Shown here: piece by piece, positions 6,418 through 59,736 of the stretch
Layout of the letters: the number at the start of each line of letters is the position of its first letter
Numbering within the stretch: position 1 is the stretch's first letter
Origin: Mobula hypostoma
Lineage: Eukaryota
Length of the DNA: 64,000 nt
NCBI RefSeq assembly: GCF_963921235.1
Contig: NC_086109.1
Coordinates: 11,594,001-11,658,000, forward strand
Reading direction: 5' to 3'
Position numbers and translations under genes: made by a program
The notes under the pieces: model-generated
The model's input: the letters and a program-made list of their open reading frames with translations, nothing else
The model's database searches: none
Told to the model about the DNA's origin: nothing

Positions 6418-6499
6418 TCAGCGAATCTCTGGTCTGGAAACTGGGCTGATTTGTCTTAGTCGTAGGTTCTGCTTTTCATGGACTTTCTCATTTACTTGT
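6418..6499 (-). CDS. Gene A cytoplasmic/terminal exon ([26 protein letters not shown])
   Basis: Acceptor ctttctgtttttctag|A in phase 2, TGA at 6418-6420, AATAAA about 130 nt downstream. Confidence 0.78.
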
Positions 6500-9400
6500 C
6501 TAGAAAAACAGAAAGTCACTGATTAAGAGGTGAGAATTGCAATATGATTGATGATATTTCTCATCAAGGGACACTGTTGATAGTCTCCAGGTGGAGTGTC
6601 AGGGGTGGATGGATTTATGTGGTGGTGGGTGTGGATGGTGTGTTGGTAGGCTGGTGTGCGAGTCTGTTAAACTGTGGGGCTTCCTTGGGGCTGTAGTGCG
6701 TGGAGTGTGGATGTTGGATGATGTGCAGGCTGGTGGGTCCAAAGGGAGAAGACTGAGCTGTTTGCTGCAGGATTTGTGAGTGAAGTGCCATAAAGTTGTT
6801 TGGGGAGTGGGTGTGGAGCGGGAGCTGTCTAATAACATTCCAGAAGGGTATGGTGAAATTAGATTGGAGATAAATGGAAGCGTAGTGTCAGGGCATGCAT
6901 GTGATGAGATTTGTATGTCTCCAAATGGTGACCACCCTCTCTAGCCCTGAAAAGCTAAACATGAGTGTGCAGTGCTATTTCATCAGAAGAATAATTTTTA
7001 TAGATTGAGTTTGAGAATCTGGCTCAAGGACTGAAGGCCCTGAGGTGGCCTGGCCTGGATTGTCTATGTGTGTGGGGTGGGGTGGTGAGTTAGTGTATGG
7101 AAGGGATGGGAAAGGGACTAGTTTTGCTGTTATTGATTTGTTTTGTTGTTGTTGTTCCGGTTGTTGCTTACATTGTTCTGCGGAGAAATGTGGAATGCTA
7201 TTTTGTTACCATAATGTGTGGTGACACTTGTGAATGTCCTTGGGTGTGCTGGTTGTTAATAGAAATGATGCATTTCATTGTATGTTGCAATGTACATGTG
7301 AATCTGAATTCAAATACAGTTATTAGCCTTCATTTCAATATTATTCTTCTCATATGGTCTGTACACATTTTGTTCAGGTGTATAACCATTTGTGTGTCGC
7401 CGCTGCTGTTTCACTCCAAGGATAATGGTTAGTAGATACAATCACAAAAATTGCATGCCAATATCTTTATTTTGTTAGTAAGTCAAAGAGATTCAATATT
7501 TCAAGGAGCTCTCTAACAAGCTTCTAAATATGTACTTTTGAAAGTATCTTGACTTGTTACATTGTGGTCTGGTAATTGCAGAAAAATAAGTAGCTGAAGA
7601 GGGTAGTGGACTTTGCCTATTACATCATGGGAACGTCCTTCCCCACCACTGGGCATATCTACAGGTGCCGGAGCCTTGTGAAGGCAACAACCATCATGCA
7701 AGATCCATCATTTGGACTATGCATTTGTCACAGCTACCATCAGACAGGAGGTACAGAAGCCTGAAGTTTGGCATCACCAGGTTCAAGGTTCAACCATTTG
7801 GTTCTTGAAGGAACTGCAGAACCGTAATCTCTCTCTCAGTATTCATTTATTTAGAGATACAGCGTGGAACAGGCTCTTCTGGCCCTGTGAGTTGTGCCGG
7901 TCAGTAAACCACCTCTTTAACCCCAGGCTTATCATAGAGCGACTTACATAGACTAATTAACCTACGAACTGCTGTGTCTGAGGAAATCACAGCACTCAAG
8001 GAAACCCACGTGCACTCGGGAAAGACCTACAGGTTTCCTTAATGAGGATACAGGAATTGAATTCTGAGCTCTGCCGCCCCCAGCTGTAATAGCATCACGC
8101 TAACTGCTACAATAACGTGGCAGTCTGTAATCAGAATCAGGTTTAATATCTCTGGCCTATATCGTAAAATTTGCTGTTTTTGCAGCGGCAGGACATTGCA
8201 ATATATAAGAATAAAAAACTGGATTGCAGTAAGTATATATATGTAAAACAGTGAAATTAAATAAGTAGTGCTGAAAAAAGCAGTAAGGTAAGTTTATGGG
8301 TTCAATTTTGATTCAGAAATCAGATGGCAGAGGGGAAGAATTGTTCCTCTATTGGTGAGTGTGTGCCTTCAGGATCCTGTGTCTCTTGTAGAAGAGGTCG
8401 CGTGCGAGGTGATGGGAGCCCTTAATAATGGATACCACTTTTTGAGGCATTGCTGTATGGCAACTATATGATCACTTTCACATCTTTGCAATAATTGATT
8501 TTTTTTGTCTAATTGAGTTCTTCCTTTTATATTTTTATATAATTCATGTTTTAATGTTGTGCACCTGATACTCTGTCTGCGTTGCTGCTGCATGTTCTTC
8601 GTTGAACTTGTGCACGCACGTATCTATGCAAATGACAATAAGTTCAACTTTGACATAATGTGCAGGTTATAATCTGTTCTGTGTGAAGCAGTTATCTCAG
8701 GGAATTCACAGCAACTCTTCAGATTCTGCCTTTGATTGCATTTAATGTTAACATGGAAGTGAAGAGATTGGAAACAATATACCTTTGAACAGCTGTCATG
8801 CAAAGTATTGAAACGGTGCAAAGAACCAGAACTCCAAAGACTATCCAGCGGGTCAGAGCCCAAAAGTGGTGAATTTTCCGCTGTGTTCCTGATGGACCAA
8901 GAAAATATAATTATTGCTCACAGAGTAATCAGTAACCGAAACAGTGTAGGGAAAGTTTGAAAATGTTAGGACTTTATTCCCTGGTGCATTGAGAAATGAA
9001 GCGAGACTTGATCGAGGTTTACAAAATTATGAGGGGTTTAGACAGGGTAAATGCTAGCAAGCTATTTTCCACAGAAGTTGGGTGAGACTAGAACTTGAGG
9101 TCATGGGTTAGGTGTGAACAGTGAAATGTTTAAGGGGAATATGAGGGTGAACTTCTTCAATCAGAGGTTGGTGAGAGTAGAATTTGCAGCCAGCTGAAGT
9201 GGAGGATATAGAATTGTTCTGGTGGATGGAGTCAGAGGGATGAATTGGAGGGTTGTTTTTCAGTACTGAGCCCTGTACTGCAGGAACTGGTGCCAAGTAC
9301 CCACTTGTTTGTCGTCCATATTAACCATTTGAATGAGCGAGTAGTTGGCATGACTCATATAGTTTCCGGGCAGATGACACCAAAATTGGTGTTTAGTGGA

Positions 9401-37661: not shown

Positions 37662-37803
37662 ATTTCAGCAGTGTCAACCTGATCAGCTCCCTGTACTGTG
37701 TCTGACTTGGTCACTTCCTTATTCAGATGTCTCAAAGAGACTAGTTCCTCTTCTGGTAAAAAAAAAAGCACAAATGAACAGTGGTACAAGATTAGTTCTG
37801 TGC

Positions 37804-38269: not shown

Positions 38270-38291
38270 ATATATATATATATATATATAT
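38270..38291. repeat. (AT)11 microsatellite
   Basis: Direct reading. Confidence 0.95.
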
Positions 38292-39879: not shown

Positions 39880-40150
39880 CTGGATTGATGGATTTATGCT
39901 ACGGCTCTTGGTAGTGTCTCCATGGCAAGCATGTCAAAGGGTAGAGGACAGACTAAGAGTGGTCCCAACGGTCCTCCAGATTTGGGAGCTTAGCTCAGGG
40001 CTAACAACCATGACTGGGAAAACAAAACTGTTATGGAAACCACAATGAAGAATCCTTCTACATCTGTGTGCAGTGGTGGCCAAACACAGACAGAGATGGA
40101 GGACCTTCATTGCTGCTCTCAACACCAATAGTGAAATGGGCAGTAAGTAG
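39880..40150 (+). mobile_element. Short RTE-derived element
   Basis: gctcagggctaacaacc..aaaacaaaactgttatggaaac 5' motif joined to a gatggaggaccttcattgctgc..gggcagtaagtag 3' end. Confidence 0.45.
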
Positions 40151-42611: not shown

Positions 42612-43152
42612 CAGACAATGTTACTTCAGTCTTTACCATGACATTCTAGGTGCTATGGAAATGAAATTTGTTGTTGTCTTATTACAAAGGATTGTTCAAA
42701 CATTACAAAATCCAGTCACTGTATCCACTCCGGATTATTTTGACGAACATCATTTGCTTTGGTTGCGCTGGGTTTTACAAACTCATACAGTAAAAATGGA
42801 AAATAATGCATCGTATTGAGAGCAGCTTGTGAGATCAATCAAAACACACAAAATGCTGGAAGAACTCATCAGGTCAGGCAGCATCCATGGAGGGGAATAG
42901 TCAAATTTCTGGCTGAGCGACTTCATCGATCTCATGTTGAAATATCAACACTTTATTTCTCTCTGTAGATACTGCCTGACCTGTTGAGTTCATCCAGCAT
43001 TTTGTGTGTGCTACTCTGCATTTCCAGCACCTGAAGAATCCCTTGTGTTCAAGTCAGTTCTGGTGATTTTCTGGATCTTAATCAGTGTCTGCAAATGCTG
43101 CACTAACCTATCTGTGGATTTACAAAATTCTGGAATCTGGTCAATAAGAAAT

Positions 43153-43291
43153 CTACTGGAGGAATACAACGGGTTCAGCTGTATCTGTGGTGTGAAAATA
43201 TGCTGTCGCCATTTTGGGTCGAGACCCTGCATTAGGACCGATCCATCTGTGTTGTGGGTTCTGTTTTTCAGGGCACGTCGCACCAGCCTGT
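43153..43291 (-). CDS. Gene B cytoplasmic/terminal exon (QAGATCPEKQNPQHRWIGPNAGSRPKMATAYFHTTDTAEPVVFLQ*)
   Basis: Acceptor ttttctgtttttctag|A in phase 2; shares EKQN with the gene A tail; TAG at 43153-43155. Confidence 0.75.
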
Positions 43292-46200
43292 CTAGAAAAA
43301 CAGAAAATCCAGTGTTAGGGATTGAGGGATGAGAAGGATCAGAATAGTTGATGATATTTCTCTTCAGCAAACACTAGTGATAATTTCCTTATGTGGGTGC
43401 TGGAACAATGCAATAAGGACTCTGCAGTGGTGGGTGTTGATGCTGTGGGGTTGGGCCATTCTGTATCTGCCTGGGGAAACTGAAAATATGTGGTGGTAGT
43501 GTAAAGTTGTCTGAGCTGGAGGTTGGGTGGAGCGATAAAGGATTGCGGATGGCTTACTTCCGTGAGTGAGGCTCCATTTAGGAGTTAAAGATTAGCTTTA
43601 TTTCACACAAGTACATCGAAACGTAAAAACGTACAGTGAAATACGCCATTTGTGTCATCGACCAACACAGTCTGAGGATGGTGCTGGGGGCAGCCCACAA
43701 GTGTCACTGCTCTTCTGACGCCAACACAGCATGTCCACACCTCAGTAACCCAAACACCTCCATCTTTGGAAAGGGGGAGGGACACCAATGTGGTAACAGG
43801 GAGAACTTAAATATCCTCACAGCAGCGGGAATTGAACCGCGATCGGTGATCACTGGTGCTGTAAGATGTCGAACTAAGCATTATGCTATCGTCTTTCCTT
43901 AGTCTATTGAGCTACGTGAGATACTTGGCCAGTGGTGAAACTAAATTGGGTATGAGTGGAGCTGTGTGAGCAGGATCCCTGGTGCATGTGAGGAGCATTT
44001 TACATCTCCAAATGCCTAGTAACCTCTGTGGCCCTGAAAAGCTAAGCATAACATGTGGAGTATGTTAACTTAACTATTATATTGTTTTAATGTGTATCCT
44101 TTAACTGTTACTTTCAGCCACTTTAAGACATTTAACCATTAATGGATCTCCACCGTCATTTCACTCTAATCGTTAGTTTGCAGTTACAGATGCTTATGTG
44201 ACACTCTGAATTAATTAGCAAGGACTAATTTGAAGCTTCCACTTTTAATTGTGATTCATACGACGTGGAAGTGATGGGGTTGGAAACAATATACCTTTGA
44301 AAAGCTGTCATGCAAAGTATCGAAACAGTGCAAAGAAGCAGAGCTCCGAGGAGTATCCAACGGGTCAGAGTCCAAACATGATGAATTATTGACACATAGT
44401 TCCTGATGAACCAAGAAAATATCATTAGTTACACACAGAGTAATCAGTAAGTGCCACTGAGAAATGCATTTTATCGAATACGTGTTATCAGCAAATGATA
44501 GATACATTTTATTAAAATGGTTCAAAAAGCCAGGTCACTGAAGAATATTAACTGGATCACAGCCAAATCATGGTGAATTTTCAACTCACAGACACTGATG
44601 GAGAAAGGAAACATAATTAACAACACGCAGAGAATTCTGTAACAGTTGGGAAACGCCTTGTCCTCACATTGCACATGAAATCATTCAACGTGATGCATGG
44701 AGTATCGAGCAGTCTGCTGGTTGAGTGCTGATTCTCCAACCTATGCCCATGCCTTGGAACTGTCGCACTGCCAGTGAAACTGAGTGAAATTAATGTTATC
44801 ATATCTATGTATATATTTCTATATACTTAATGCACACTAGACCTTGTTTCCCCATCACAGTGCATAGCGGAGATAAATATAGTCAGCAACTGTGACGCTG
44901 AGGCTGTGAGGTCGCTCCAGCTGCTCTGTTTCGCGTTTGCGAACCTTGCGGCGATTCGCCCTGGTAACATGATGAGCTGATACCTAGTCTTTGAGCCTAC
45001 TCTGGGGATTTGGATCTAAGGACTCAACTTGGTACAAAATGCTGCTGTTGTTCCTCGCTTCTTTTGTTTGCACGATTTGTTTTTTTTTTCTCTTTTTCTA
45101 TGCATTGAAGGTTGGTCTTTACTTTTTAAAATTGGATTCTTTTGGGTTTCTTGCTTTGTGGCTGCCAAGGCTATATAATCTATACATTCTTTGATAATAA
45201 GTGTACTTGGAATCTTTGAACTTTACCAGCGATCAGAGTGATTTCATGTTGAATACTGATGTATATTTACTGGGTTGTTTTCCCCTTCCTTGAACCTTTT
45301 GTGTGCAGACAATCCTGCTGGAGTAAAGTCCACCATGTTGGTGTTCTGCCAGAATTATTCCTGGATAGCCCCAGGAGAGGAAGATCAGGTTGCAGAGACT
45401 GTTCTTCAGGCATTTTCTTCTCAATGTGTTGAAAAGAGGGAATTTCTGCTGTGTACAATGAGGTGCAACTAAGGCAAAGAAAATGCTCATCATGAAATCA
45501 CTGTGATCTTTGGTTGGGTTGTTCACCAAGCCCGGAGGTTAGGTCGCAAAGGTTTCGTGTCCAGTCGAGGTGACAACATCAATACGCAATTTGGGTGTTT
45601 CTGCCGAGTGCTCGCAGAAGCACAAAACAAGAAAACAAGAGAATTCTTAAAAGTTTGGTTCTCAACAGAAGACTCTATTAACAAGCATATTGGACTAGAT
45701 GCAAATTACGAACCTGTGTCTGTGGGATCGGGGGCAAGGGAACACCCAAGGAACCACCGATCAGTGACTGCTAACCAGGGACATGGGCCAGCAAGCCAGT
45801 GGTGATCACTCAGCTATCTGTTTCGCTTGGACCTAGTGTAAACTAGTGGCCAGTGCGACAGCCTACCTATCAGAACTCTGAGTCAGACCAATACAAACGC
45901 AAGCATTCGGCAGAAACAGCACTCATTTGCACACTGATGATGTCATCTCGACTGCTGTTGTAACATTTGCGACCCAACCGCCAGGCTCAGTGAACAGCTC
46001 TACAAACAAGCAGCCAACCTGAGCTACCGTCTACTCTTTCCTTTCAAGTCACTGCGATCACTGGAAAAATTGCTGACTATATTCATCTTGAGCTGTCCTG
46101 AGAGTACTGCAACATTGAGGTAAAGCTGTGGAAGTCTGAGTTGGCCCATGAAATGGCTGATCTGATCTGAATCAATGAAGCAAAAGTCTCAGTGGATCCT

Positions 46201-49200
46201 TCTAACCTGGTGGGAATTCCGTTCTGAGATGAGCTGGTCCACGTGGTTGCATTAGTAGTTTCCATGGTGCTTGCCTCATTTTCTGGAGGGTAAAGTAGAC
46301 AAAATATCTGAATATTGAAAGTTTGAAAGCAGCTTCTATCCCATCTCCATGAAGTGTGGGCAGTGCCCCACTTAGGTCACTTGCTCAGTGCCTGAAGGTC
46401 CTTGGTTCAAATCTTACTGCAGATGGTCATTGTGGTTCCCTCCTGACAAGGCCATCTTCATACAGGCTAAGCCCTATGAGCTCTCAAACATTCCCCAACT
46501 TCTATCATGAGCCTCAGTCTGGTTAGACATCGCCAGTGGAAGCACCGTTGTGTGACTTGCAGCTGTGTCTGACCTAGGAAGGGTGGGGCAATCAAGGGGT
46601 TGTGGCTGATAGGACAATGTGCAAGAGACCTGGCAATCATTCCTTTCAATTTGGAGAGTTTATTTCTTGTGAGAGTCCATGCTTGCGTTGTCTTCAGTTA
46701 TTAGAGAAAAAGGGTGACAATATATTCCTGATTTTTGGGACGCTCCCAGAGGTTCCTGAATTTGGGGCACTCTCAGGGAGATTCTTTGGCCATTCTTTGT
46801 CCCTGGTCATAGAATGTTGCTGAGAGTGTCCCAAATTCAGGAAAATCTCTGGTGCAGCAAGGACCACATCTAACCTCTTCACCTAAGGATGTCCACTGCT
46901 GTCATTACTTTGCCCCTGTGGCTGGAGTCTTGGAGCTGGTCACCAATCTAGATCCCACTGACACAGCATTCCTGTATCGGACTGAGGAGTGGGGTGAAGG
47001 TAGAGGGGCTCTGAGCCCAATCTGTCCACTGCTGGTACAGGGAACAGGCCTGACATAGAAACATAGAAAACCTACAGCACAATACAGGGTTGTGCCGAAC
47101 ATGTCCCTACCTTAGAAATTACTAGACTTACCTATAGCCCTCTATTTTACTAAGCTCCATGTACCTATCTAAAAGTCTCTTAAAAGACCCTATTGTATCT
47201 ACCTCCCCCACAGTTGCCGGCGGCCCATTCCACGCACTCACCACTGAGAAAAAAAACTTACCCCTGACATCTCCTCCGTACCTACTTCCAAGCACCTTAA
47301 AACTGTGTCCTCTCGTGCTAGACATTTCAGCTTTGGGAAAAAGCCTCTAACTATCCACAGGATCTATGCCTCTCATCATCTTATACACCTCTATCAGGTC
47401 ACCTCTCATCCTCCATTGCTCCAAGGAAAAAAGACCAAGTTCATTCAACCTATTCTGATAAGGCATGCTCCCCAGTCCAGGCAACATCCTTGTAAATCTC
47501 CTCTGCACACTTTCTATGGCTTCCACGTCCTTCCTGTAGTGAGGCAACCAGAACTGAGCACAGTACTCCAAGTAGGGTCTGACCAGGGTCCTATATAGCT
47601 GCAATATTACCTCTCAGCTCCCAAATTCAATTCCACGATTGATGAATGCCAATACACCGTACGTGTTCTTAACCACAGAGACAACCTGCACAGCTGCTTT
47701 GAGGGCCCTATGGACTTAGACCCCAAGATCCCTCTGATCCTCCACACTGCCAAGAGTCTTACCATTAATACTATATTCTGCCATCATATTTGACTTGCCA
47801 AAATGAACCACCTCACACTTATCTGGGTTGAACTCCATCTGCCACTTCTCAGCCCAGTTTTGCATCCTATCAATGTCCTGCTGTAAACTCTGACAGCCCT
47901 CCACACTATCCGCAACACACCCAACCTTTGTGTCATCAGCAGACTTACTAACCCATCCCTCTACTTCCTCATCCAGGTTATTTATAAAAATCATGAAAAG
48001 TAAGGGTCCTAGAACAGATCCTTGAGGCACTCCACTGGTGACTGACCTCCATGCAGAATATGATCCATCTACAACTATTCTTTGCCTTCTGTGGGCAAGC
48101 CAGTTCTGGATCCACAAAGCAATGTCCCCTTGGATCCCATGCCTCCTTACTTTCTTAAGCCTGGCATGGGGTACCTTATCAAGTGCCTTGCTGAAATCCA
48201 TATACACTACATCTACTGCTCTTTCTTCATCAATGTGTTTAGTCACATCCTAAAAAAATTCAATTAGACTCGTAAGGCATGACCTGCCCTTGACAAAGCC
48301 ATGATGACTACTCCTAATCGTATTATACCTCTCAAAATGTTCATAAATCCTGCCTCTCAGGATCTTCTCCATCAACTTACCAACCACTGAGGTAAGACTC
48401 ACTGGACTATAATTTCCTGGGCTATCTCTACTCCCTTCCTTGAATAAAGGAACAACATCTGCAACCCTCCAATCCTCCGGAACCTCTCCCGTCCCCATTG
48501 ATGATGCAAAGATCATTGCCAGAGGCTCAGCAATCTCCTCCCTCTCCTCCCACAGTAGCCTGGGGTACATCTTATTCGGTCCCAGCGACTTATCCAACTT
48601 GATGCTTTCCAAAAGCTCCAGCACATCCTCTTTCTTAATATCTACATGCTCAAGCTTTTCAGTCTGCTGCAAGTCATCACTACAATCATCAAGATCCTTT
48701 TCACAGTGAATACTGAAGTAAAGTATTCATTAAGTTCCTCTGCTATTTCCTCCTGTTCCATCCACACTTTCCCTCTGTCATAATTGATAGGTCCTATTTT
48801 TTTCATGTCTTATCCTCTTGCTTTTCACATACTTGTAGGATGCCTTGGAGTTTTCCTTAATCCTGCCCACCAAGGCCTTCTCATGGCCCCTTCTGGCTCT
48901 CCTAATTTCCTTCTTAAGCTTCTTCCTATTAGCCTCATAATCTTCTAGATTTCTAACATTACCTAGTTCTCTGAACCTTTTGTAAGCTTTTCTTTTCTTC
49001 TTGACTAGATTTATTACAGCCTTTGTACACCACAGTTCCTGTACCCTACCATAACCTCCCTGTCTCATTGGAATGTACCTATGCAGAACTCCACACAAAT
49101 ATCCCCTGAGTATTTCCCACATTTCTTCCATACATTTCCCTGAGAACATCTGTTTCCAATTTATGCCTCCAATTTCCTGCCTGATAGCCTCATAATTCCC

Positions 49201-52200
49201 CTTACTCCAACTAAATGCTTTTCTAATTTGTCTGTTCCTATCTCTCTCCAATGCTACTGTAAAGGAGACAGAATTATGATCACTATCTCCAAGATGCCCT
49301 CCCACTGAGAGATCTGACACCTGACCAGGTTCATTTCCCCATACCAAATCAAGTACAGCCTCTCCTCTTGTAGGCTTATCTACATATTGTGTCAAGAAAC
49401 CTTCCTGAACACACCTAACAAACTCCACCCCATCTAAACCCCTTGCTCTAGGAAGGTGCCAATGGATATTTGGGAAATTAAAATCTCCCATCGCAACAAC
49501 TGTTATTATTACACCTTTCCAGAATCTGTTTCCCTATCTGCTCCTCGATATCCCTGTTACTATTGGGCGGCCTATAAAAAAACACCCAGTAAAGTTATTG
49601 ACCCCTTCCTTTTCCTAACCTCCACGCACAGAGACTCCGTACACAATCCCTCCATGGCGTGCACCTATTTGCAGCCGTGACACTATCTCTGATCAACAGT
49701 GCCACACCCACACCTCTTTTGCCTCCCTCCCTGTCCTTTCTGAAACATCTAAGACCCGGCACTTGAAGTAACCATTCCTGTCTCTGAGCCATCCAAGTCT
49801 CTAATGACCTCCAGCTCCCACTGCTTGGAAACTGGAGATCTAAGAGGGGAGTGCGGAGGTGAAACGGGGGTCGGGTGAAGTAGCTCAAAGAAAGAGGCTG
49901 AGAGAAAGGAGGGGTTGATCAGTTCACAGAAGAGGAATAAAGGGCAATAAGAAAAGGACATTTGAAGGTGCTAATAGGGTATCTACCTCTACCATTAAAT
50001 CTAGAGATGCTGACTGACCTATTGAGAATTTCCCATGATGTGTACCTTCTGTGTTGGCTCAGTGCAAAGACCAGACAGACATTTTTGCTCGGGGGAAATG
50101 ATTGGTAGAATTGGCAGAACTGGATCAAGGTGAAGCAATGGAATCACCACTGTGTGTGAGTGGTGAACGTGAGCTTGGTGGGCAGGGGAACAGGGGTTGG
50201 GCTGGTTCCTCTCCTCCTGTTTCAGTGAGACTCAGCACAAGGTCTGATCTTAGAACCGCAGTCTTTTGGGGAAAATGTCTTATCAACAGCTGAAAAGCTG
50301 GCCGCCGGGATCTTCCTGTCAGGTTTATCAGCTCATTCATACTCCCCCCAGGAAGGTGGAGCTCTTCTTTGTCCTTATCGGCTGCACCCCTGCAAATGAG
50401 TTCCCATCTCTTTAATGGTACTGAGTCACAGTCAGAGCTGAGGGAGGGAATTCCTAAGCTGCGATTTTCTAATATGGAAGCTTGACGAGAAATTGTAAAC
50501 GTACCTTCAGAAACTTCCAGTGAAATGATAAACCTTTTTCTCGGTACGTATATTACCCTCTCCATTATACACTGATACACCCCTTCATCACTCTTCATTA
50601 GATTGTCCACGGTTACCGAAAGAATCCCTCGTATTTTGTTGTCAGTCATTGATACTCGTCCTCTTCGTGGCTGGTCAGTCGAAACCACAGTGGAACAACC
50701 CACGTGAGGATCACCTCTACACCATTTCTTCACGTAGTCCTTATACTTCGGATCATACTGGCATTCCACAGTGACTGACTGTCTCACTGCTCCTCTAACC
50801 TTCTCAGGTCCAGTTAATGCACCTGAGCCTGTTGGCACATGAATAATGGAAGTTACCCACACGTCATCAGCACAAGGTGCATTTAGCAACATACACTCAT
50901 CTTATTAACTGCTTAGAGAATCTCGCAGAGATCATGTTCCTCTTGAATATTTTATCCCGGGTGTTAATCCTCATTTCACCGAGTTGTTCCTCAAATTACA
51001 GTAAAAGCTATAATGGGTGGTCAGGCGTTCACAACTTGCGTGTCTGTTGTTTCTTGTTGTGAGCAGGCTGTGAATCCTGGAGAAATGATCCCTGCTGTAG
51101 TTCAGTGAGGGAGCCGCCACCTCCTCAGCGGCAACATGAGATGGCAGATAGGTTCTGGCCTGGTCACTGTTGTAATGAGTTTACTGGGGGATCATCCAGT
51201 GAGGATCTCTGGGTGAACCTGAGAAATAAGAAGGGGTTGATCATTCTACTCCAGGCGGGCTAATCATCAATGGGTATAAAAGGAACCTTCAAAGTGGTTG
51301 CAGAAAGTTTTAAAAAAAAAATTAGTTTTCTTTCATAGTAGGGGATATCATGATTCCTTATAAACAGTGGGACTGCCTTAGTGCTTAGGGCTTTAATGTG
51401 ACAGAATTTAAGTGTATTCAGGAAAATTCTCAAGCAATATATCGAATGCTTTACTCTGAAGATGGCAAAGTTTGATCTACTCTTTGGACCACGATCAATT
51501 GGGGTATGGCATATTCTGTGGTATTAAATAGGAACTTGGCAAAGTTGACTGTGACACAGAAATGGCTTGCTGGTGCGAAGGGAAGCGTGAGGGTTTATAG
51601 TTGTTTATTGGGTTAGAGGTCTGTGACCAGCATTGTGCCTCAGGTGCTGGTGCGAGGCGGATTGTAATTTGTCACGATATCAGGAAAAGGACATCTGCAG
51701 GTGATTATTTATACAGCAATATAAAAGATTTTTCTTTCATAATTGATAAAAATAAAGCAACCAGTCAGTCTTCCAGTGTATTAAAAAAATTCTCACTGAG
51801 ATATTGTTAGGACTGCCATCAATTCCAGCCTTTCTAACTCAGTTCCTAGTGATCACTAATGCTTATTTTCTCACCTGCTGGTAACTTCAGACATTTATTC
51901 TCAGTTCTACTCCACCTCCTGACTCAAATCTTGGTACCTGTCCCAATCTTTAACCAGTTCTTTACCACACAAGCTTTACTCTCTGCTCTCCCTACCCTAT
52001 CAACAACCTTTCTTTGTCTTCTGTCCATCCACGCTACTCTTCCCCTGCCATTTTCTTCTTGGGACACATCGCCCCTACTGGTGTAGAGGCCATGGATAGA
52101 AGCTCAGCAGAGTCCACTGTCCTGGGCCAGTCTTTCAAATTTTCCCAGGTGTAACCCATCTCCATGGTGTATCTTTCCTCTCCCATGGATGAGATCTTTG

Positions 52201-55200
52201 GAGCTTCTGTTGGTGTTTCTGTAGCTCTGGGTTTTCACGAGATTTTTTTTTCTTACTTTAATTTATTTAGTGATATAGTGCAGAGTAGGCCCTTCCAGAA
52301 ACTCACCTATTTAACCCTAGGCTAATCTCAGGACAATTTACAATTAGCTTACTAACTGGTACGTCTTTGGATTGTGGGAGGAAACCGGAGCATCAGGAGG
52401 AAAGTCACAGGAAGAAAGTACAAACTTTCTTACTGAGAACACTGGAATTGAACGCCAAACTCCAATGCCCCATGCTTAAGTAGTGTTGAGCTAACCACCA
52501 TGCTACTGTGGGTTGCTAGCCTCATGCTGAACTCTTCTCCTTTTGCATCTGGGCTTGGGACTGTCCATTTGTGGAGTCTTCCCTCTACCTGCGACTGAAC
52601 AAATTTTTGACCTCAAATGCTTCCATTACCAATGAAAGAGTATCTAGCTGAATCATTAGCTCTATTCTCCTTGCCATTGATTTTAGTTAACCTGCTGTAC
52701 GTATCCAGGGATGAGGCATGAGTTGTGGTTAGTGAAAGGGAGGAAATTCACAGGATGAGATTTTCAAACTTGGGAATGTGATGTCAAATTGTATACATAC
52801 CTTCAAGAGATGTCTGCACATCTATTGATTTTATTTTCTTTTCTATTAGTAATTTCAGCTCCTAGTCTTCTATTTACCACCCATCTGTCTGCTTCTCTGA
52901 ATTGTAACTTCTGCATTTCCTCAAAATATTGGCCGTTCAGATTGACCTGAAACATTAAGGTTGTTTTCTCCCCACGGATGGTGCCTGACCTGCTGAGTAT
53001 TTCCCACATGATCCACTTTATTTTTTACTTTCTGTGTGGCTCAGTCCAAAGACCAGATCACCCTTCCTATCTGGGAATTTATTGCTGGAGCTGGACTTAG
53101 TTGAAGCAATGTGCGAGAGGTGAGGGTGAGCTTGGTAGGCAAGAGGACAGGTGTGAAGCTTGTTCCTCTCCTCCTGCTCCAGTGAGAGTCGGCTTAATGT
53201 CTGATCTCAGAGCCACTGTCTTTGTGGAAGTGACCCATCAGCAGGAGAACAACTGGCCATTGAGACCTTCCCGTTGGTTCAGGGTTTCACAGTCCATTCA
53301 CATCCTTCCAGGAGGTTGGGGCTCTTAGTGTGTCCCCATAGGCTGAGATCCTCAGTAATTGCGGACTCAGTCCTTTGATGCCCAGGGATGAAGCACTGAA
53401 TTGTGGTCAGTGCAAGGAGGGAATTCCTAAGCTACGATTTTTAAACTTGGGAATGAAAGACAAATTATTAACATACCTTCAGACACCTCGAGTGAAATGG
53501 TAAACCTTTCATTTGGTGTCAACATTGCCCTTTCTATCATACACTGGTACAGCCCTTCATCACTCTTCCTTAGATTGTCCATGGTTACTGAAAGTATCCC
53601 TCGTGTTTTGTAATCGGTCATTGTTATTCGTTCACTTCGTGGCTGGTCAGTTGAAACCACAGCGGAACAACCAATGTGTGAATCACCTCTGCACCATTTC
53701 TTCACGTAGTCCCTGTATCTCAGATCATACCAACATTCCACAGTGACTGATTGTCCCACTGCTCCTCTGACCTTTTCAGGTCCAGTTAGTGCACCTGAGC
53801 CTGTGGGTACATGAATAGTAAAAGATTACCCATGCATCATCAGCACAAAGTGCATTTAGCAAGATAAACTCATCATGTCTACTAGAACATGGAACATGGA
53901 ACAAAGAACAGCACCGCAGAGGAAAAGGCCATTTGGCCCATTGTGTTGTGCCAAGCCAGCTAAAAACCAAATCTAATATACCCAAACACTCATCCATCTA
54001 CCTACAACATGTCCATATCTCCGCATTGTCCTGCCTATATAAAAGTCTCTGAAAAGCTTCTGATATATTTGCCTCTACCACCATATCAGGCAGCACATTC
54101 CAGGCATCCATAACTCTGAGTAAAGAAACTTACTCCTCACACCACCCTTGAGCCTACTGTTCTGAGAGCTTCATGGTTGTGCAGAGATCATGTTCCACTT
54201 TAATATTTTATCCTTGGTGTTAATCCTCATTTCTTTGAGATTGTTTGTCAATGTTCAGTGAATGCGGAACCGCTCACCCTAATATGTCTAAGCTTTGTAT
54301 TTGGTGTTTCTTGTTTGGGTTGCGAATTCTGCTGAAATGATAACTGCAGTGGTTCAGCGAGGGAGGCATGATCTTGCGGAGCAACCAGAGATAGCAATAA
54401 ATTCTGGCCTTCCCACTGATGCCCAGGTTTAAATGAATTTACTGGGGTTCCAGTGAAGCTTTATGGATGAAACTGGGGTGTATGGGGTGTCAGGGAGGGG
54501 TAGCACCTCTGGTGGGGGAACATGTCGCGTCCATTTCAGGGCGGTTAGTCCACCTTTGGTCCCCACCTGGTACTCAGCTCTCACCTGTGGCTCCCCGTAG
54601 CTGTTTGCATGCGACAGCGGCCACACCCCGGGCAACAGCTTTGACAAGCCGGCTAAACCAGGTGAGGGTAGCCGACGGGTCTCAAACCCTCGGTGAGATA
54701 GGGAGTTGTCTATCCCAGCATGTGAAGACAGACTCTGGTGGATTGAGTGGACGAGACCAATGGAAGGTCCAATAGTCAAGAAGGCAGTCTCTGCAAGCGT
54801 CGTGAAATGTGTAGAGCAGGACAAGACACAGAAGACGTCCTGGTCATCCACTGCGCCTAGTCCCATCTCCAGCCATCTTGACTCTGTCTTGCCACTGGAT
54901 CCAGATGGGAATTGGGAAGAGAGAGTGAGGCTGACACTGAGCAACTCTCCCTCACTTAAATCCAACTCACGCGCTAGTCTCGACACCATCATAATGGTGT
55001 CAAGGTCCTCATCGATGTCGACAATGGACGAACAATGATTGAAACTGAGAAATGAGGATGGGTTAACATACAAAACACCGGAGGAACTCAGCAGGTCAGG
55101 CAGCATCTATGGGAATGAATGAACAGTCAACATTTCAGCCTGAAACCCTACTTCAGAACTGTCATGTAAGGGGGAAGACACTAGAATAAAAAGATGTGGG

Positions 55201-58200
55201 GAGGAGAAGGAGATAAGCCAGAAGGTGATAGGTGAAGCCAAGTGTGTGGGAAAGCTAAAGGGCTGGAGAAGAAGTAATCTGATAGGAGAGTAGAAGAAAC
55301 CATGGGATAAAAGGAAGGAGGGGCAGCAGGTGATAAGCAAGTGAGGAGAAGAGATAAGAGGTCAGAGTAGAGAATAGAGGAAGAGGGAGGAAGGTGGCAA
55401 AAAAATGATCAGAAACAGAAATTGATGATCATACCATTTGGTTGGAGGCTACCTGGATGGAATGAGGTGTTGCTCCTCCATCCTGGGAGTGGCCTCATCA
55501 TGGCAAAAGGGTAAGCCAAGGACCGACATGTCAAAATGGGGATAGGAATTAAGATGGTTGCCTTCTAGGAAATTCAGCTTTTGATGGATGTGCTTGACAA
55601 AGCAGCACTCCAAGTTACACCTGGAAGACTGGGGCTCTGAATGGAGTTACGGGAGGAGGTGAATGAACAGGTATAGCATTTTTGTCACTTGCACAGATAT
55701 GTGCCAGGAGATAGATTAATGGGGAAGGGATTTACAGACAAGGAAATCATAAAGGGAGCAATTACTGGAGAAGCTGAGAGTGAGGGATGATTATAAGACC
55801 ATAAGATTATGATGTGTTTGTTGGTAGAATCCTGTTAAAATGGCAGAAATTGGGGAGAATGGTATCTTGGAATCAAGGGGTGAGCGTAGATGTCCAGGAA
55901 GTAAAAGTGATTCAGGTGGGAGCAGCATCAATGGTGGAGAAAGAGAAAGCCTGTTCTTTGAAGGAGGAGGACATATCTGATGTTCTCAAAATGAAAGCTT
56001 CATCATGGGAACAGATGTGGGAGAGACGAAGGAACTAAGAAAAGGGAAAAGCATTTTGATAGGCAATATGATGGGAAGAGGAATAGCCAAGATAGCTATG
56101 GGATTCAGTAGGCTGACCCAAAGAAAATACAATGGAGTCATGGTGTGCGGACACGAGCTCAGTATTGTAGGAGCAGGCAAAGGCCATAGGCTGACCTGGA
56201 CAGTCAGGTTTGTGAATCTTAGACAGGAGGTTGAAATGAGGAGTCTGGGGTAAGGGACCTACGAGCTTGGTGGTGGTGGATAAGATTTACCAAAGTTGAT
56301 GAGGTTAGTGATGGTATCAGAGACAATTTTCTGATCACTTTATTCAGATTGTACCATAAGCTGTCTCACCACACCTTGTACTATTGTAAATTAACTCCCC
56401 CAGCTCCTGTATTCCATACCTTAACTGATGAAGGCCAATATACCAAACTTCTTCACCATCCTGTCTGCCTGTGTCGCTGCTTTCAGCAAATTGTGTACTT
56501 TTACTCTTAGGTTTGACCATACATGTATTGATTTTCTTTTCTATTCTGTTGGTAATTTGAGCTCTTGGTTTTCTCTCCAACCACCCCACCCTTCTCCTTC
56601 TCTGCATTGTAACTCTTGCATTTCCTCTAAGTATAGGCAGTTCAGATTGATCTAGAACATTAAGATTGTTTTCTGCTCAGAGATGCTGCCTGGCCTGCTG
56701 AGTATTTCCCCCATTATTCACTTTATTTTGTATTTTCTGTGTGGCTCAGTCCAAAGACCAGATCACCCTTCCTATCTGGGAATTTATTGCTAGAATTGGC
56801 AGAGCTGGATAGAGTTGAAGCAATGTAATCACAACAATGTGTGAGTGGTGATGGTGAGCTTTGATGGATAGGGGAACAGATGTGTAGCTCGCCCTTCCCC
56901 TTCTGTTCCAGTAAGAGTCAGTACAGTGTCTGATATTGAAGCAACTGTCTTCAGGGAAGTGACCCATCAACAGCAGAACAGTCGGCCATTGGGACCTTTC
57001 CATCAGTTTAGTGTTTGACAGTCCATTCATACCTTCCCAGGAGGTTGGGGCTGTTAGTGTGTCCCAATAGGCTGGGATCCTCACTAAATAAGGCTCCGAT
57101 CCTTGATCCCCTGGGATGAGGCACTGAGTCATGAATAGTGTGAGGGAGTGAATTTGGGATTTTCAAATTTTGGAACAAAAGGGAAATTGTTAACGTACCT
57201 TCAGAAACCTCCAGTGAAATGGTAAACCTTTTATTCGGTACATATATTAACCTCTCCATTACACACTGGTACAGCCCTTCATCACTCTTCCTTAGATTGT
57301 TCACAGTTATCAAAAGAATCCTTTGTGTTTTGTTATCAGTCATCAATATTCGTCTTCTTTGTGGCTGGTCAGTTGAAACCACTGTGGAACAACCAATGGA
57401 AAGATCACCTTTACACCACTTTTTCATGTAGTCCATGTATATCCGATCATACCGACATTCCACAGTGACTGATTGCCCCACTACTCCTCTAATCTTCTCA
57501 GGTCCAGTTAATGCACCAGAGCCTGTGGGTACATTAATAATGAAAGATTACCCACACATCATCAGCACAAAGTATACTGAGCAATGTAAACCAATCATGC
57601 ATACTGTTCAAAGAGTTTCCTGATTTTGAAGAGATCATGTCCCACTTTAATAGTTTATCTTTGATGTTAATCCTCATTTCATTGAGATTGTTCCTCAACG
57701 TTTAGTTAAAGCAGAATGGCTCACCCTAATGATTCTGAACTCTGTGTCTGTTGTTTCTCATTTTGAATGTGTTGTGAATTCTGTGGAAATGATTGCTGCA
57801 GTGGTTCAGTGAGGGAGTGATCACCTTCCTAGGGGCAACTAGGGATTGCAATAAATTCTGGCCATGCCACTGATGATCACATTGTTATAAAGTTTCTGGG
57901 GCCCCAGTTGGCCTCATTGGTGATAGCAGGAAATAAGTAGGGGTTAACACATACAACTTGACAGGTCAGTCAGTGTCTATGGAAATGAACAGAGTCAACG
58001 TTTCAGATCAAGACCCTTCGTCAGGACTGGAAATGAAGGGGGAAGACAACAGAATAAAATGATGGGGGGAGGGGAAGAAGATAAACTAGAAGGTGATAGG
58101 TGAAGCCAGATATGTGGGAAAGCTGAAGAACTGGAGAAGGAGGAATCTGATAGCAGAAGACAATGGATCACAGGAGAAAGGGAAGAAGGAGGAACACGAG

Positions 58201-59736
58201 GAGATGGTGATAGGCAGGTGAGGAGAAGAGATAACAGGCCAGAGTGGAGAATAGAAGAAAGGGGATGAGGGAGGGCTGGAACATGGACTGTTCCACGTGA
58301 CTAACGAAAAGACAGACATAAATGATGTCCATGTGGTTGCCTATGGCTACTCAGTGAGCTTGGAGAAAATGGGAGGAGCTGAAGAAGAAATTGGTGAGGG
58401 TGGGTACCAGTTCTGCTGGATGGAGGAGGGTGGTGATGGAGTGGAAATGATGGGGTCTTTTTTTGAGGAAGATGCAGAGAACTTTAAGGATCTCCTCTAC
58501 AGCAGTTTTTCATGTAGTCCTTGTATCATACCGATCATACTGACAATCAACAGTGCAACACAAGCTACTGTTCAAAGAGTTTCATGATTTTGTAGATATG
58601 GTGTTCCACATTAGTATTTTATCCCTGGTGATAGCCCTAATATCTCTGATTTTTTTTTTTCCTCACGTCATAGTGAAAGCAGAATCACCCAGCCTGATGT
58701 TTCCAACCTGTCCCTATGTTGTTCAAGTTGTGAACAGATTGTGAACATTGGAGAAATAATCCTTGCTGTGGTTCAAAGTGGACGGCACCAGCTCCTCCAC
58801 AGGGGCATCCAGGATGGGTAACAAATAACAGCAATGCCACCGATGCCCTGACCACAACGATAACATAAATTTAAGACTAAAAGGCCACCATAAATAGGTG
58901 CAGAATTAGGCCATCTAGCCTGCACTGCCATTTGATCATGGCTGAGTTATTTTCCCTCTCGATTCTATTCTCCAGCTTTTTCCCCGTAGCCTTTGACACT
59001 CTTACAAATTAAGAACCTGTCGACCTCCACCAAATCCTTTCATAGAGTTGGGCCTAAAGTTACTCACAACTTAATGGCTGCATATTATTTATTTATCTAG
59101 ACCATCATAATTAAAGGACAAAACAGTTTGCTGAGGTTCCTCATTATTCCGCTGTCCCCAGCTGCTACTTCAAGTTTGCCCATTTGTAATTGGAGCTGTT
59201 TCCTCTCCTGTAATTGAATATCCAAGCTGGAAATTTTACAGAGGGACAGTTTCCATGGATGATTTATCCCTGACATATTCCCCAATAAAATTCTGTCAAT
59301 CTACATTGGGAGGATCGCTAAATGCAGAAATATTGGTCCGACAGTGGAGATATTTTAGTTGTTGCTCTGTCTGTGTTGAAACTACTGCCCACATGGCAGA
59401 GAGTCCAGGCTATTTCTGGGATCATCTTGCTGTGCACCCATTGCACCTCTTGACCAGAATCCTGGATAATTCACGACAGCAAATGGCATTATTCTCAACG
59501 GTTCATCTTCAGCTCTCCCACCCAGTGCATGATCCGACATCAGCAGAACTTCCTGCATCTGTCAGTGTTATTCATTAGAAAACTGTACAGTACTTGTTAA
59601 TATCTATAAACATCATATATTTTAGATATAATGCTTTACCTGATACAAAACCAGTGGAGATGAGAACCAACAGAGCGATAGCTCCCATTGTCCTGGGGTG
59701 TCTTTGGTGCATGAATTCACCCAACACCAGCTCCAT
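43153..59736 (-). CDS. Gene B: CD300/pIgR-like (CMRF35-like) type I membrane receptor with 3 V-type Ig domains; join(59640-59736, 57199-57522, 53477-53800, 50505-50828, 46207-46282, 44295-44402, 43153-43291), 463 aa
   Basis: All seven exons have AG/GT boundaries with compatible phases (1,1,1,1,2,2). They sum to 1392 nt, an open frame from ATG to TAG. The V domains show the CD300/pIgR pattern GP..V.G..G.SV.V.C.Y...K.WC.G.....C...D.G.Y.C. Confidence 0.85.
43580..43900 (-). mobile_element. tRNA-derived SINE
   Basis: Same family as 38880-39150 (gcagcgggaattgaaccgc head, caacacagtctgaggatg tail). Confidence 0.55.
44295..44402 (-). CDS. Gene B transmembrane exon ([36 protein letters not shown])
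   Basis: Acceptor ttttcttggttcatcag|G and donor AAG|gtatat; 108 nt, phase 2-2. Hydrophobic segment with an Arg; paralogous to 8783-8888. Confidence 0.88.
45516..46000 (+). mobile_element. Miniature Penelope-like element (second family) with inverted pLTR arms
   Basis: 45516-45612 is an imperfect reverse complement of 45902-46000. The centre encodes AQNKKTREFLKVWFSTEDSINKHIGLDANYEP (GIY-YIG C-terminus-like); ctgatgatgtcatctcgac is a hammerhead-like core. Confidence 0.65.
46207..46282 (-). CDS. Gene B Ser/Thr-rich stalk exon (E-NEASTMETTNATTWTSSSQNGIPT-R)
   Basis: Acceptor ctactttaccctccag|AA and donor AG|gttaga; 76 nt, phase 1-2, which bridges V (phase 1) to TM (phase 2). Mucin-like composition with an NAT sequon. 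Confidence 0.75.
47053..49800 (-). mobile_element. CR1 LINE, ORF2 (endonuclease + RT) with frameshifts, 5'-truncated
   Basis: ORFs 48778-49491, 48250-48672, 47716-48246 and 47347-47604; (ctatgttt)n tail at 47053-47070. Confidence 0.92.
50505..50828 (-). CDS. Gene B V-type Ig exon VB3 ([44 protein letters not shown]...DEGVYQCIMERVIYVPRKRFIISLEVSE)
   Basis: 324 nt, acag|GC to GAAG|gtacgt, open, same Cys pattern. Confidence 0.93.
52250..52505 (-). mobile_element. V-SINE inserted in an RTE-like fragment (52080-52565)
   Basis: tttcctcctgatgctccggtttcctcccacaatccaaagacg central V-domain on the minus strand. Confidence 0.65.
53477..53800 (-). CDS. Gene B V-type Ig exon VB2 ([44 protein letters not shown]...[28 protein letters not shown])
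   Basis: 324 nt, acag|GC to GAAG|gtatgt, open, same Cys pattern. Confidence 0.93.
54476..55039 (+). mobile_element. Short non-autonomous retroposon (probably RTE-related) carrying the HDV-like ribozyme at its 5' end
   Basis: 564-bp insertion into the V-flanking module, bounded by the direct repeat TGAAACTG (54468-54475 / 55040-55047); no coding capacity. RTE affinity is inferred. Confidence 0.6.
54484..54668 (+). ncRNA. HDV-like (delta-like) self-cleaving ribozyme candidate
   Basis: P1 GGGGTGT(54484-90)/ACACCCC(54623-29); P2 CTCTCACCTG/CAGGTGAGGG; P3 GGC/GCC; L3 starting TCCCCG; J1/4 GGGCAAC; P4 GCTT-TGAC-AAGC; J4/2 GGCTAA with candidate catalytic C54653. Element order matches the HDV nested double pseudoknot. 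Confidence 0.7.
55060..56340 (-). mobile_element. Degraded Penelope-like element
   Basis: pLTR/hammerhead remnant at 55080-55160; tgaaagcttcatcatgggaacagatg parallels the 29595-29630 RT segment. Confidence 0.6.
57199..57522 (-). CDS. Gene B V-type Ig exon VB1 ([44 protein letters not shown]...[28 protein letters not shown])
   Basis: 324 nt, acag|GC to GAAG|gtacgt, four Cys in the CD300/pIgR arrangement, no stops. Confidence 0.93.
57950..58480 (-). mobile_element. Penelope pLTR fragment
   Basis: Purine-rich pLTR body with the hammerhead at 57993-58028. Confidence 0.55.
57993..58028 (-). ncRNA. Minimal type I hammerhead ribozyme motif (Penelope pLTR)
   Basis: AGTC-CTGACGA-agggtcttgatct-GAAA-C-GTT-GACT: intact core, stem I agtc/gact, palindromic minimal stem III. 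Confidence 0.6.
58501..58555 (-). pseudogene. Decayed fourth V exon remnant of gene B
   Basis: Minus strand reads ACT GTT GAT TGT CAG TAT GAT CGG..TAC AAG GAC TAC ATG AAA (TVDCQYDR/YKDYMK, frameshifted). It is followed by the same upstream-intron module (58560-58850) that flanks every intact V exon. Confidence 0.75.
59640..59736 (-). CDS. Gene B exon 1, leader/signal peptide MELVLGEFMHQRHPRTMGAIALLVLISTGFVS-G
   Basis: 97 nt from ATG to the donor CAG|gtaaag, phase 1. It has a hydrophobic h-region and is homologous to the 37565-37661 exon. Confidence 0.85.

Follow-up and report, generated by a model that had tools for sequence, protein, structure and literature searches.

Two tandem CD300/pIgR-like receptor genes with one and three V domains in the devil ray Mobula hypostoma

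Gene models and shared sequence

The window, that is, the whole 64,000-nucleotide stretch of DNA that was analysed, comes from the devil ray Mobula hypostoma, in agreement with the cartilaginous fish source proposed in the original prediction. It carries two tandem paralogues on the minus strand, hereafter called gene 1 (202 aa) and gene 2 (463 aa) (Table 1). No flanking non-family genes were found in the window, only LINE fragments. Both earlier models were rebuilt exactly with canonical GT/AG sites: the 202-aa model was reproduced at once, and the 463-aa model required a 76-nt stalk exon that the original prediction did not mention. Gene 1 consists of a leader exon, one V exon, a transmembrane (TM) exon and a tail exon; its ORF is intact across these four exons, and its leader is identical to residues 1-32 of the RefSeq protein XP_062922428.1. 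Gene 2 consists of a leader exon, three V exons, the stalk exon, a TM exon and a tail exon, all seven open and bordered by canonical splice sites, with the frame closing exactly at 463 residues. The V numbers proposed earlier, one versus three, were recovered, and all four V exons are intact phase 1-1 units of 324 nt with AG/GT borders.

Table 1. Positions within the window of the exons and other features of gene 1 and gene 2
Feature	Position	Strand	Remarks
Gene 1 leader exon	37565..37661	-	ATG at 37661; signal peptide; phase 1 end, donor GTAAAT
Gene 1 V exon	32873..33196	-	CD300/pIgR-type V-set with WC-x7-C; Pfam, PDB, AF2/Foldseek
Gene 1 TM exon	8783..8888	-	106 nt; donor 8783 used in RNA contigs
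Gene 1 last coding exon	6418..6499	-	27-aa tail; stop TGA 6418-6420; acceptor 6499 used in RNA contigs
Gene 1 3'UTR, at least	5687..6417	-	RNA-type contig X4, 6499->5687, no gaps or differences
Gene 2 leader exon	59640..59736	-	Three in-frame ATGs, first at 59736
Degenerate V cassette (pseudo-exon)	58485..58649	-	Internally deleted; between gene 2 leader and V1; blastn
Gene 2 V1 exon	57199..57522	-	324 nt, phase 1-1
Gene 2 V2 exon	53477..53800	-	324 nt, phase 1-1
Gene 2 V3 exon	50505..50828	-	324 nt, phase 1-1
Gene 2 stalk exon	46207..46282	-	76 nt, phase 1 to 2; ENEASTMETTNATTWTSSSQNGIPT; Ser/Thr-rich; one N-glycosylation site
Gene 2 TM exon	44295..44402	-	108 nt
Gene 2 last coding exon	43153..43291	-	46-aa tail, without ITIM or ITAM
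Gene 2 3'UTR block common to gene 1	42669..42847	-	Sequence match to 6229-6406

As proposed earlier, leader, V, TM and tail exons form paralogous pairs that are collinear between the genes, with matches far beyond chance (E 1e-12 to 1e-112). Nucleotide identity reaches 73% for the leader exons and 84.6% over 188 nt for the TM exons, flanks included. The common 3'UTR sequence, previously placed at 6190-6395 and 42620-42840, was found as a block of 70% identity (Table 1), which in gene 2 is separated from the stop codon by a repeat insertion (~42840-43050). Similarity in the last intron, proposed at 6500-7050 versus 43300-44060, was likewise found, as collinear blocks (6500-6651 vs 43292-43456, 6851-6973 vs 43933-44061, and 8721-8782 vs 44234-44294). 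A further 470-nt block (31760-32300 vs 46560-47160, 75%) was considered as an exon and rejected; its indels do not keep the frame, and we therefore read it as intron or old repeat sequence. The pseudo-exon upstream of V1 was detected by blastn in two segments (33073-33141 vs 58485-58555, 80%; 33279-33359 vs 58569-58649, 77%), and tblastn matches in this region are weak.

The stalk exon is needed in gene 2 because the TM exon is out of frame without it: direct use of the acceptor homologous to that of gene 1 causes a frameshift (GTMCQ-stop). A donor 4 nt downstream of V3 gave a product of 439 aa and was dropped once tblastn with the Hemitrygon stalk (P0002 residues 243-284, E 1e-3) had revealed the 76-nt exon; this exon, also matched by P0005 residues 374-415 (E 5e-5), has AG/GT borders and brings the product to exactly 463 aa. 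Stalk homology extends 51 nt beyond the donor of the model, a GT is lacking at the ancestral exon end, and the modelled donor is a guess as to the site actually used.

Searches of gene 1 by blastn and tblastn found no stalk exon. In all relatives, a stalk of 25-45 residues precedes the membrane span, followed by a phase-2 TM exon. The TM exon of gene 1 is 2 nt shorter than that of its paralogue and can follow the V exon directly without a frameshift, leaving ~10 residues between V domain and membrane. Gene 1 would thus have lost its stalk exon, with a 2-nt deletion at the start of the TM exon keeping the frame, which would place the V domain almost directly on the membrane. The nucleotides left over in the RNA-type contig X4 (see below) and the RefSeq model point to this direct V-to-TM junction. 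The gene pair illustrates changes in domain number and stalk length through exon duplication, exon loss and frame compensation.

Fold and lineage of the V domains

The original prediction had placed the V domains in the CD300/pIgR/TREM group, whose Cx7C definition is found in the literature (bioRxiv 10.1101/2022.04.21.489081), and Pfam, PDB sequence searches and the predicted fold all support this placement. The four V exons match the Pfam V-set with E values of 1e-11 to 2e-15 (1.8e-15 for gene 1), and Cys22, Trp35 and Cys86 show little or no variation in the V-domain alignment. All four domains harbour a WC-x7-C motif between the canonical cysteines, which aligns with KYWCRQGARGGC, the second cysteine pair of human pIgR D1; a second, Cx7C disulfide is accordingly predicted in the V domains of both genes. 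In the PDB sequence search, the first-ranked proteins are pIgR, CD300lf, CD300a/c, NKp44 and TREM2. The gene 1 V domain matches CD300lf at E 3e-20 and 37-39% identity; pIgR has the best summed score, whereas the best single-domain match is CD300lf (75 bits vs 35 for pIgR D1). The AF2 model of the same domain has a pLDDT of 92.8 and eight predicted beta strands. CD300lf/CD300f entries take all ten top places in its Foldseek search (TM-score 0.87-0.92, 32-39% identity), ahead of pIgR D1, CD300a/c, TREM2 and NKp44; the closest solved structure is mouse CD300lf, with a TM-score of 0.90 versus 0.84 for pIgR D1. No other IgSF family ranks above the CD300/pIgR/TREM group by Pfam, PDB sequence or predicted fold. 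The V exons are better conserved than their own flanks, with dN/dS ratios of 0.39-0.80 among all four and 0.39-0.53 among those of gene 2.

We built the V-domain tree from elasmobranch domains and teleost pIgR domains; the relation to mammalian CD300, PIGR and TREM rests on the PDB sequence and fold searches. V domains of Mobula and Hemitrygon group together in one clade (100/98), there are separate clades for skates, for Narcine and for sharks, and teleost pIgR D1 and D2 make up separate long-branch clades (99/100 and 100/100). Judging from the tree, Narcine, skates and Mobula each acquired their multi-V arrays independently. Elasmobranch RefSeq proteins include many paralogues of the family. 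The lineage-specific, expanding family of the original prediction is borne out by the clustering of V domains by lineage and the separate origin of the arrays. Gene 2 shares 29/32 leader, 96/107 V1 and 101/107 V2 residues with the Mobula birostris protein P0001.

The V exons may be regarded as interchangeable 324-nt phase 1-1 cassettes that would have been multiplied by tandem duplication within the ray lineage. One could imagine that such cassettes behind one leader allow combinatorial exon skipping, yielding receptors with one, two or three V domains on one activating TM module, with stalk loss and the 2-nt deletion as a second route to altered geometry, but we hold this to be quite improbable. 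Less likely still is that cartilaginous fish have their missing Ig-binding (pIgR-like) receptor in the three-V product. The original prediction put the three-V member forward as a candidate Ig-binding or lipid-binding receptor, which it stays.

Receptor class, expression and competing readings

Both TM segments carry an arginine (Arg154 in gene 1, Arg396 in gene 2) inside 19-residue windows with a Kyte-Doolittle hydropathy above 1.6. It sits right at the outer margin of the hydrophobic span and could be a boundary residue. It is part of a motif common to both genes, W-x-x-x-R-W-x-x-(F/L/V)-G-x-L...VS..C, which is also found in M. birostris, Hemitrygon, Leucoraja, Amblyraja, Heterodontus and Carcharodon proteins; the Arg-Trp pair is invariant in nine relatives from rays, skates and sharks. 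A motif search of both genes found no ITIM, ITSM or ITAM in either tail, and relatives with similar ectodomains have ITIM-bearing tails (P0002, P0155, P0140 and P0012); Hemitrygon, Leucoraja and Pristis are among the genera with ITIM-bearing relatives. From the invariant Arg-Trp pair and the short, motif-less tails we infer that both genes encode activating, adaptor-coupled receptors; neither the activating-type TM arginine nor the frame compensation between stalk and TM exons figured in the original prediction. Their V domains would bind ligand and, as the receptors have no signalling motif of their own, the TM arginine would pair with the TM aspartate of an ITAM adaptor of the FcR-gamma or DAP12 type. 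Within their cluster, the two proteins may act as activating counterparts to paralogues that carry ITIMs. In cartilaginous fish, no FcR-gamma chain was reported by a 2014 survey (PMC4016189). Sharks and rays have both retained the Arg-Trp module since their divergence, which points to old adaptor-coupled signalling in cartilaginous fish.

Transcription of gene 1 is documented by RNA-type contigs in which the TM-to-tail splice (6499->8783, GT..AG, minus strand) is used, X4 and X9 from the same species and X12 from a second, sister species. X4 covers the 3' end of gene 1 fully; of its 1362 nt, the 441 nt beyond the aligned stretch have the combined length of the V exon (324), the leader (97) and 20 more. 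Overall, it is probable that the locus holds two tandem paralogues of the elasmobranch CD300/pIgR-like family, encoding activating-type, adaptor-coupled type I membrane proteins whose V domains were duplicated in the ray lineage.

Expression of gene 2 is presumed. Its TM-tail stretch is absent from all RNA-type runs, in contrast to the 3' end of gene 1, and a search for a matching M. hypostoma RefSeq protein between 166 and 528 aa in length gave none, so that gene 2 may be silent. It could even be an unexpressed or decaying copy on its way to becoming a pseudogene, rather than a functional three-V receptor: in M. birostris the orthologue is represented by no more than a 302-aa partial model, gene 2 no longer has the ancestral stalk donor, a repeat has inserted into the 3'UTR and a fourth V cassette has decayed. 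We find this doubtful, given seven open exons with an exact frame, V1 and V2 domains 90-94% identical to the M. birostris orthologues with cysteines and framework kept, and the dN/dS ratios among its V exons; moreover, the RNA sample comprises a few small runs of unspecified tissue. Gene 1, in turn, could be a damaged copy. Every relative has a stalk, the V-TM intron of gene 1 spans 24 kb full of LINE fragments, and the compensation is not strong evidence, since one in three random indels would restore the frame; a transcribed gene with a stalkless product of no receptor function is therefore conceivable. However, the ORF is intact, the transcript is correctly spliced in two runs, the orthologue is transcribed in the second species, and TM and V are conserved, which makes this reading unlikely. 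That all these exons belong to one larger transcription unit with neighbouring genes, and not to two genes, is very unlikely. The idea comes from the 565-aa RefSeq model XP_062922428.1, which is identical to gene 1 over residues 1-195, V-TM and TM-tail junctions included, and then runs chimerically into the V-stalk-TM unit of the next paralogue, outside the window; the M. birostris and Hemitrygon annotations likewise contain chimeric models (P0153, P0004). Against it, X4 reads on without splicing past the RefSeq donor and the stop codon and includes 730 nt of 3'UTR, the two genes have separate leaders with an ATG, separate stop codons and separate 3'UTRs, and the piece linking the RefSeq halves resembles transposon ORFs. 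Two separate genes remain our reading, which corrects the chimeric model and supplies a full model for the three-V gene.

The original prediction held that orthology to pIgR could not be assigned from the window. We agree, and the evidence goes further and speaks against orthology. pIgR has an uncharged TM segment, and its long tail contains signals for sorting and transcytosis; here, we found an arginine at the TM segment and tails of 27 and 46 aa. Because of the TM arginine, the short tails, the multigene cluster and the V-domain tree, in which pIgR is represented by teleost domains, we conclude that the two genes are not pIgR orthologues. A functional counterpart of pIgR, with the three-V protein carrying J chain-containing polymeric IgM across ray epithelia by transcytosis, would fit the RefSeq family name 'polymeric immunoglobulin receptor-like', the tandem array of pIgR-type V domains, the top rank of pIgR by total PDB score and the literature, according to which cartilaginous fish have a J chain (PMC10081254) and no PIGR homologue was found in them by a 2014 survey (PMC4016189). 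Nevertheless, we rate it as highly improbable: single domains match CD300lf better than pIgR D1 in both bit score and TM-score, the TM arginine is of activating type, the 46-aa tail is of a type common to the one-V paralogue, the gene sits in a multigene cluster of 1.3 Mb, the V domains cluster by lineage apart from the teleost pIgR D1 and D2 clades, and multi-V arrays appear independent in Narcine, skates and Mobula.

Comparison with known receptor families

With pIgR (four to five domains in tetrapods, two in teleosts), the ray genes have in common tandem Cx7C V domains encoded by one phase 1-1 exon each, and the highest summed PDB score. They differ from it by the TM arginine, the short tail and the multigene setting, and by V domains that do not group with teleost D1/D2 and match CD300 best. 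Teleost NILT and zebrafish PIGRL are likewise lineage-specific, fast-duplicating, non-rearranging families with Cx6C/Cx7C V domains in variable number and with activating, inhibitory and motif-less members (bioRxiv 10.1101/2022.04.21.489081); they belong to another vertebrate class, and the ray TM module is elasmobranch-specific.

Mammalian CD300 (CMRF35-like/CLM/IREM), CD300lf in particular, is the best sequence and fold match to the ray V domain (TM-score ~0.90). It has a single V-set domain with the extra Cx7C disulfide, and its gene cluster combines activating members (charged TM, short tail) with inhibitory ones (ITIM). In contrast, gene 2 has three V domains, gene 1 is almost devoid of a stalk, and the ray arginine lies at the outer TM edge, in a motif specific to sharks and rays. 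The likeness shown is one of sequence and fold.

Most likely, the family is the one described in skate as MDIR, a match made by description. According to PMC3031540, which cites Cannon et al. 2006, these modular domain immune-type receptors are an activating and inhibitory multigene family of cartilaginous fish whose Ig domains resemble CD300, TREM and pIgR. This portrait agrees with the activating-type genes in the window, their ITIM-bearing elasmobranch relatives and the many paralogues. Among skate RefSeq proteins, the nearest, from Leucoraja and Amblyraja, show 48-55% identity in the V domain and have the TM motif in common; when a skate protein was used as the query, none of the matches bore the name MDIR. 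Besides the description, the comparison with the Raja eglanteria MDIR family runs through unnamed homologues in other skates, and the ray V arrays differ in having arisen within the stingray/devil-ray lineage. The receptor family was already known in sharks and rays; what is new is the addition to the devil-ray CD300/pIgR-like (MDIR-type) cluster of two cleanly resolved members, one of them RNA-supported.

Models of the two receptor genes

The original prediction was of a tandem pair of CD300/pIgR-like receptor genes. A six-frame scan with the Ig hallmark pattern C...W...D.(A/G/S).Y.C detected exactly four open V-type segments in the window (near 33.0, 50.6, 53.6 and 57.3 kb), every one of them on the minus strand, and tblastn searches with these segments and with candidate transmembrane (TM) and tail pieces counted four V, two TM and two tail copies. 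Blastn comparison of one half of the window with the other gave collinear matches between gene 1, with one V domain, and gene 2, with three (see table), bearing out the predicted coordinates and shared sequences of the paralogues.

Exons, collinear matches and LINE-type open reading frames of the two-gene region
Feature	Position	Strand	Remarks
Gene 1 leader	37661-37565	minus	GT/AG joined model
Gene 1 V	33196-32873	minus	GT/AG joined model
Gene 1 TM	8888-8783	minus	GT/AG joined model; 106 nt
Gene 1 tail	6499-6418	minus	GT/AG joined model
Gene 2 leader	59736-59640	minus	
Gene 2 V1	57522-57199	minus	324 nt, phase 1-1
Gene 2 V2	53800-53477	minus	324 nt, phase 1-1
Gene 2 V3	50828-50505	minus	324 nt, phase 1-1
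Gene 2 stalk	46282-46207	minus	76 nt; tblastn with P0002 of Hemitrygon akajei
Gene 2 TM	44402-44295	minus	108 nt
Gene 2 tail	43291-43153	minus	
Match, leader	37515-37668 vs 59592-59743		73% identity
Match, V exon and ~250 nt of upstream intron	around 32873-33196 vs each of the 3 gene 2 V exons		80-83%, E about 1e-110
Match, TM exon with flanks	8751-8935 vs 44263-44450		84.6%
Match, 3'UTR	6229-6406 vs 42669-42847		70%
Match, last intron, block 1	6500-6651 vs 43292-43456		65%
Match, last intron, block 2	6851-6973 vs 43933-44061		70%
Match, last intron, block 3	8721-8782 vs 44234-44294		73%
LINE-type ORFs	21325-24345, 29162-31072, 47716-49491, 61055-62686		Pfam Exo_endo_phos, RVT_1

Joining the four exons of gene 1 gives 609 nt and reproduces the predicted 202 aa. 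For gene 2, a model without a stalk exon was rejected, because the preceding phase-1 V exon would put its TM exon (2 nt longer than that of gene 1) out of frame. The stalk exon, bordered by the acceptor CCCTCCAG and the donor GTTAGA, takes the reading from phase 1 to phase 2; with it, the frame closes at 1392 nt, matching the predicted 463 aa. Homology to Hemitrygon and Mobula stalks runs in frame for 51 nt beyond the modelled donor (46156-46206); GT is absent from the end of the ancestral stalk exon in that stretch, and the upstream donor CAG/GTTAGA preserves the phase, 76 and 127 nt both being 1 mod 3.

A 470-nt block 3' of the gene 1 V exon (31760-32300) and of V3 of gene 2 (46560-47160), 75% identical with frame-breaking indels, is common intron sequence or an old co-duplicated repeat. 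In gene 2, a short dispersed repeat inserted at 42840-43050 separates the stop codon from the shared 3'UTR block; it recurs at 2652-2700, 15298-15364, 17591-17700 and 55066-55138. LINE endonuclease and reverse-transcriptase ORFs occupy the upstream flank and one intron in each gene, the 24-kb one between the V and TM exons in gene 1 and the one between V3 and stalk in gene 2; one such element is present in three copies, about 70-75% alike.

Transcripts and annotation

RNA contigs were aligned to one 6-kb span (5000-10999), which takes in the TM and tail exons of gene 1 and does not reach its V exon, 24 kb from the TM exon, so that the V-to-TM joint is a modelled one. The last exon and 3'UTR of gene 1 are fully contained in X4, a small M. 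hypostoma run (143 Mb), to 71% in X9, also of M. hypostoma, and to 43% in four small runs that come from a second species. Contigs of X4, X9 and X12 (second species) carry the joint 6499->8783, whose CT..AC ends read GT..AG on the minus strand, and unique intron stretches of gene 1 in this span have zero contig coverage; the runs are therefore cDNA and bear out the modelled splice from TM to tail. A 1362-nt X4 contig covers 5687-6499 and 8783-8890 with zero differences, and its 441 nt outside the aligned stretch fit by length the V exon (324 nt), the leader (97 nt) and 20 nt of 5'UTR, so that a stalk exon would not fit in. This contig also continues unspliced past the stop codon and the donor that the RefSeq model uses, in support of a 202-aa product with a 3'UTR no shorter than 730 nt. 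For gene 2, none of the RNA-type runs searched contains the TM-tail stretch.

No trace of a stalk exon was found for gene 1 in a search of the window. In every relative compared, from skates, sharks, Hemitrygon and M. birostris, this junction has R on its left and N/D, nine residues and W on its right, which implies a phase-2 TM exon after a stalk. For this reason, we read the 2-nt deletion in the TM exon of gene 1 as derived and as compensating for stalk loss. In the second-species contigs X12 and X13, the TM-exon match ends 6 nt before the exon start (8883-8888), exactly at the site of this deletion; the orthologue there may differ at these positions or join another exon.

In an exhaustive protein search, 2404 cluster representatives passed E<=1e-3 and 95 passed E<=1e-30. 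They include P0005, the RefSeq entry XP_062922428.1 (565 aa, 'polymeric immunoglobulin receptor-like [Mobula hypostoma]'), whose residues 1-195 are identical to the gene 1 model and which is then spliced out of the terminal exon to a transposon-like piece and a V-stalk-TM unit outside the window. Because the RNA contig is unspliced through the exit point, this entry looks like a chimeric model of gene 1 and the next paralogue. The V domain of the latter (residues 266-372) is identical to that of gene 1 over its first ~42 residues and resembles V2 of gene 2 thereafter, a mosaic that suggests gene conversion or unequal exchange among V exons of the cluster. The closest protein to gene 2 is P0001, a partial 302-aa M. 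birostris model (92.7% identity), and no M. hypostoma protein for this gene was found among the proteins of 166-528 aa. The other relatives, from rays, skates, a sawfish and sharks, carry names assigned automatically, either 'polymeric immunoglobulin receptor-like' or 'CMRF35-like molecule'; the RefSeq family name 'pIgR-like' is likewise automatic.

Identity and evolution of the V domains

All four V exons match Pfam V-set. Against PDB sequences, the V domain of gene 1 gave the top total score with pIgR, from several domains at 33-37 bits each, and the best single-domain score with mouse CD300lf (75.5 bits, E 3e-20), followed by human CD300f, CD300c, CD300a, NKp44, TREM2 and pIgR D1; a profile of 48 V domains ranked the families identically. 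An AlphaFold2 model (pLDDT 92.8) had CD300lf as its best fold match (TM-score 0.87-0.92, 37-39% identity), then human CD300f, pIgR D1 (0.84), CD300a/c, TREM2 and NKp44. These results bear out the predicted CD300/pIgR/TREM-group assignment. The two cysteines of WC-x7-C fall opposite the second cysteine pair of pIgR D1 in the alignment, and a Cx6C/Cx7C pair is described as common to CD300, TREM, NKp44, PIGR and teleost NILT (bioRxiv 10.1101/2022.04.21.489081).

In a maximum likelihood tree of 61 V domains, all those of Mobula and Hemitrygon form a single clade (100/98), with separate clades for skates (100/97), Narcine (100/97) and sharks (97/96), and separate long-branch clades for teleost pIgR D1 and D2. 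As the domains group by elasmobranch lineage, the 5-V Narcine, 3-V skate and 3-V Mobula arrays arose separately, and the predicted lineage-specific family holds. V1 and V2 of gene 2 each pair with an M. birostris orthologue, and V1 and V3 are sisters. The dN/dS values between the four V exons are 0.39-0.80, with differences clustered in CDR-like loops. A fourth V cassette of gene 2, decayed, lies at 58485-58649 between leader and V1; parts of the exon and upstream intron are left, the exon 5' end and acceptor being deleted.

Signalling type and relation to known receptors

Hydropathy analysis assigned each protein a single signal peptide and a single TM segment, which is preceded by or begins with LTRW. 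The Arg-Trp and a downstream (F/L/V)-G-x-L...VS..C are kept in nine relatives from M. birostris, Hemitrygon, Leucoraja, Amblyraja, Heterodontus and Carcharodon. A motif search found no ITIM, ITSM or ITAM in the tails of gene 1 (27 aa) or gene 2 (46 aa). The relatives P0002, P0155, P0140 and the second half of P0012 have similar ectodomains but different, uncharged TM segments and ITIM-rich tails. CD300, KIR and LILR/PIR are paired receptors, and FcR-gamma partners have an Arg close to where the TM segment begins on its outer side. From this paired-receptor pattern, we infer that genes 1 and 2 probably encode activating, adaptor-coupled members.

Neither gene is a pIgR orthologue, since TM segment, tail, copy number and tree all stand against it, which goes beyond the original view that orthology to true pIgR could not be assigned; in a 2014 survey, no PIGR turned up in cartilaginous fish (PMC4016189). 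The observation of a tandem CD300/pIgR-like pair is confirmed and its interpretation supported, the genes being further members of a known receptor family. By description rather than by sequence, they fit the modular domain immune-type receptors (MDIR) described in skate (PMC3031540), and they would work like the CD300-type paired receptors.
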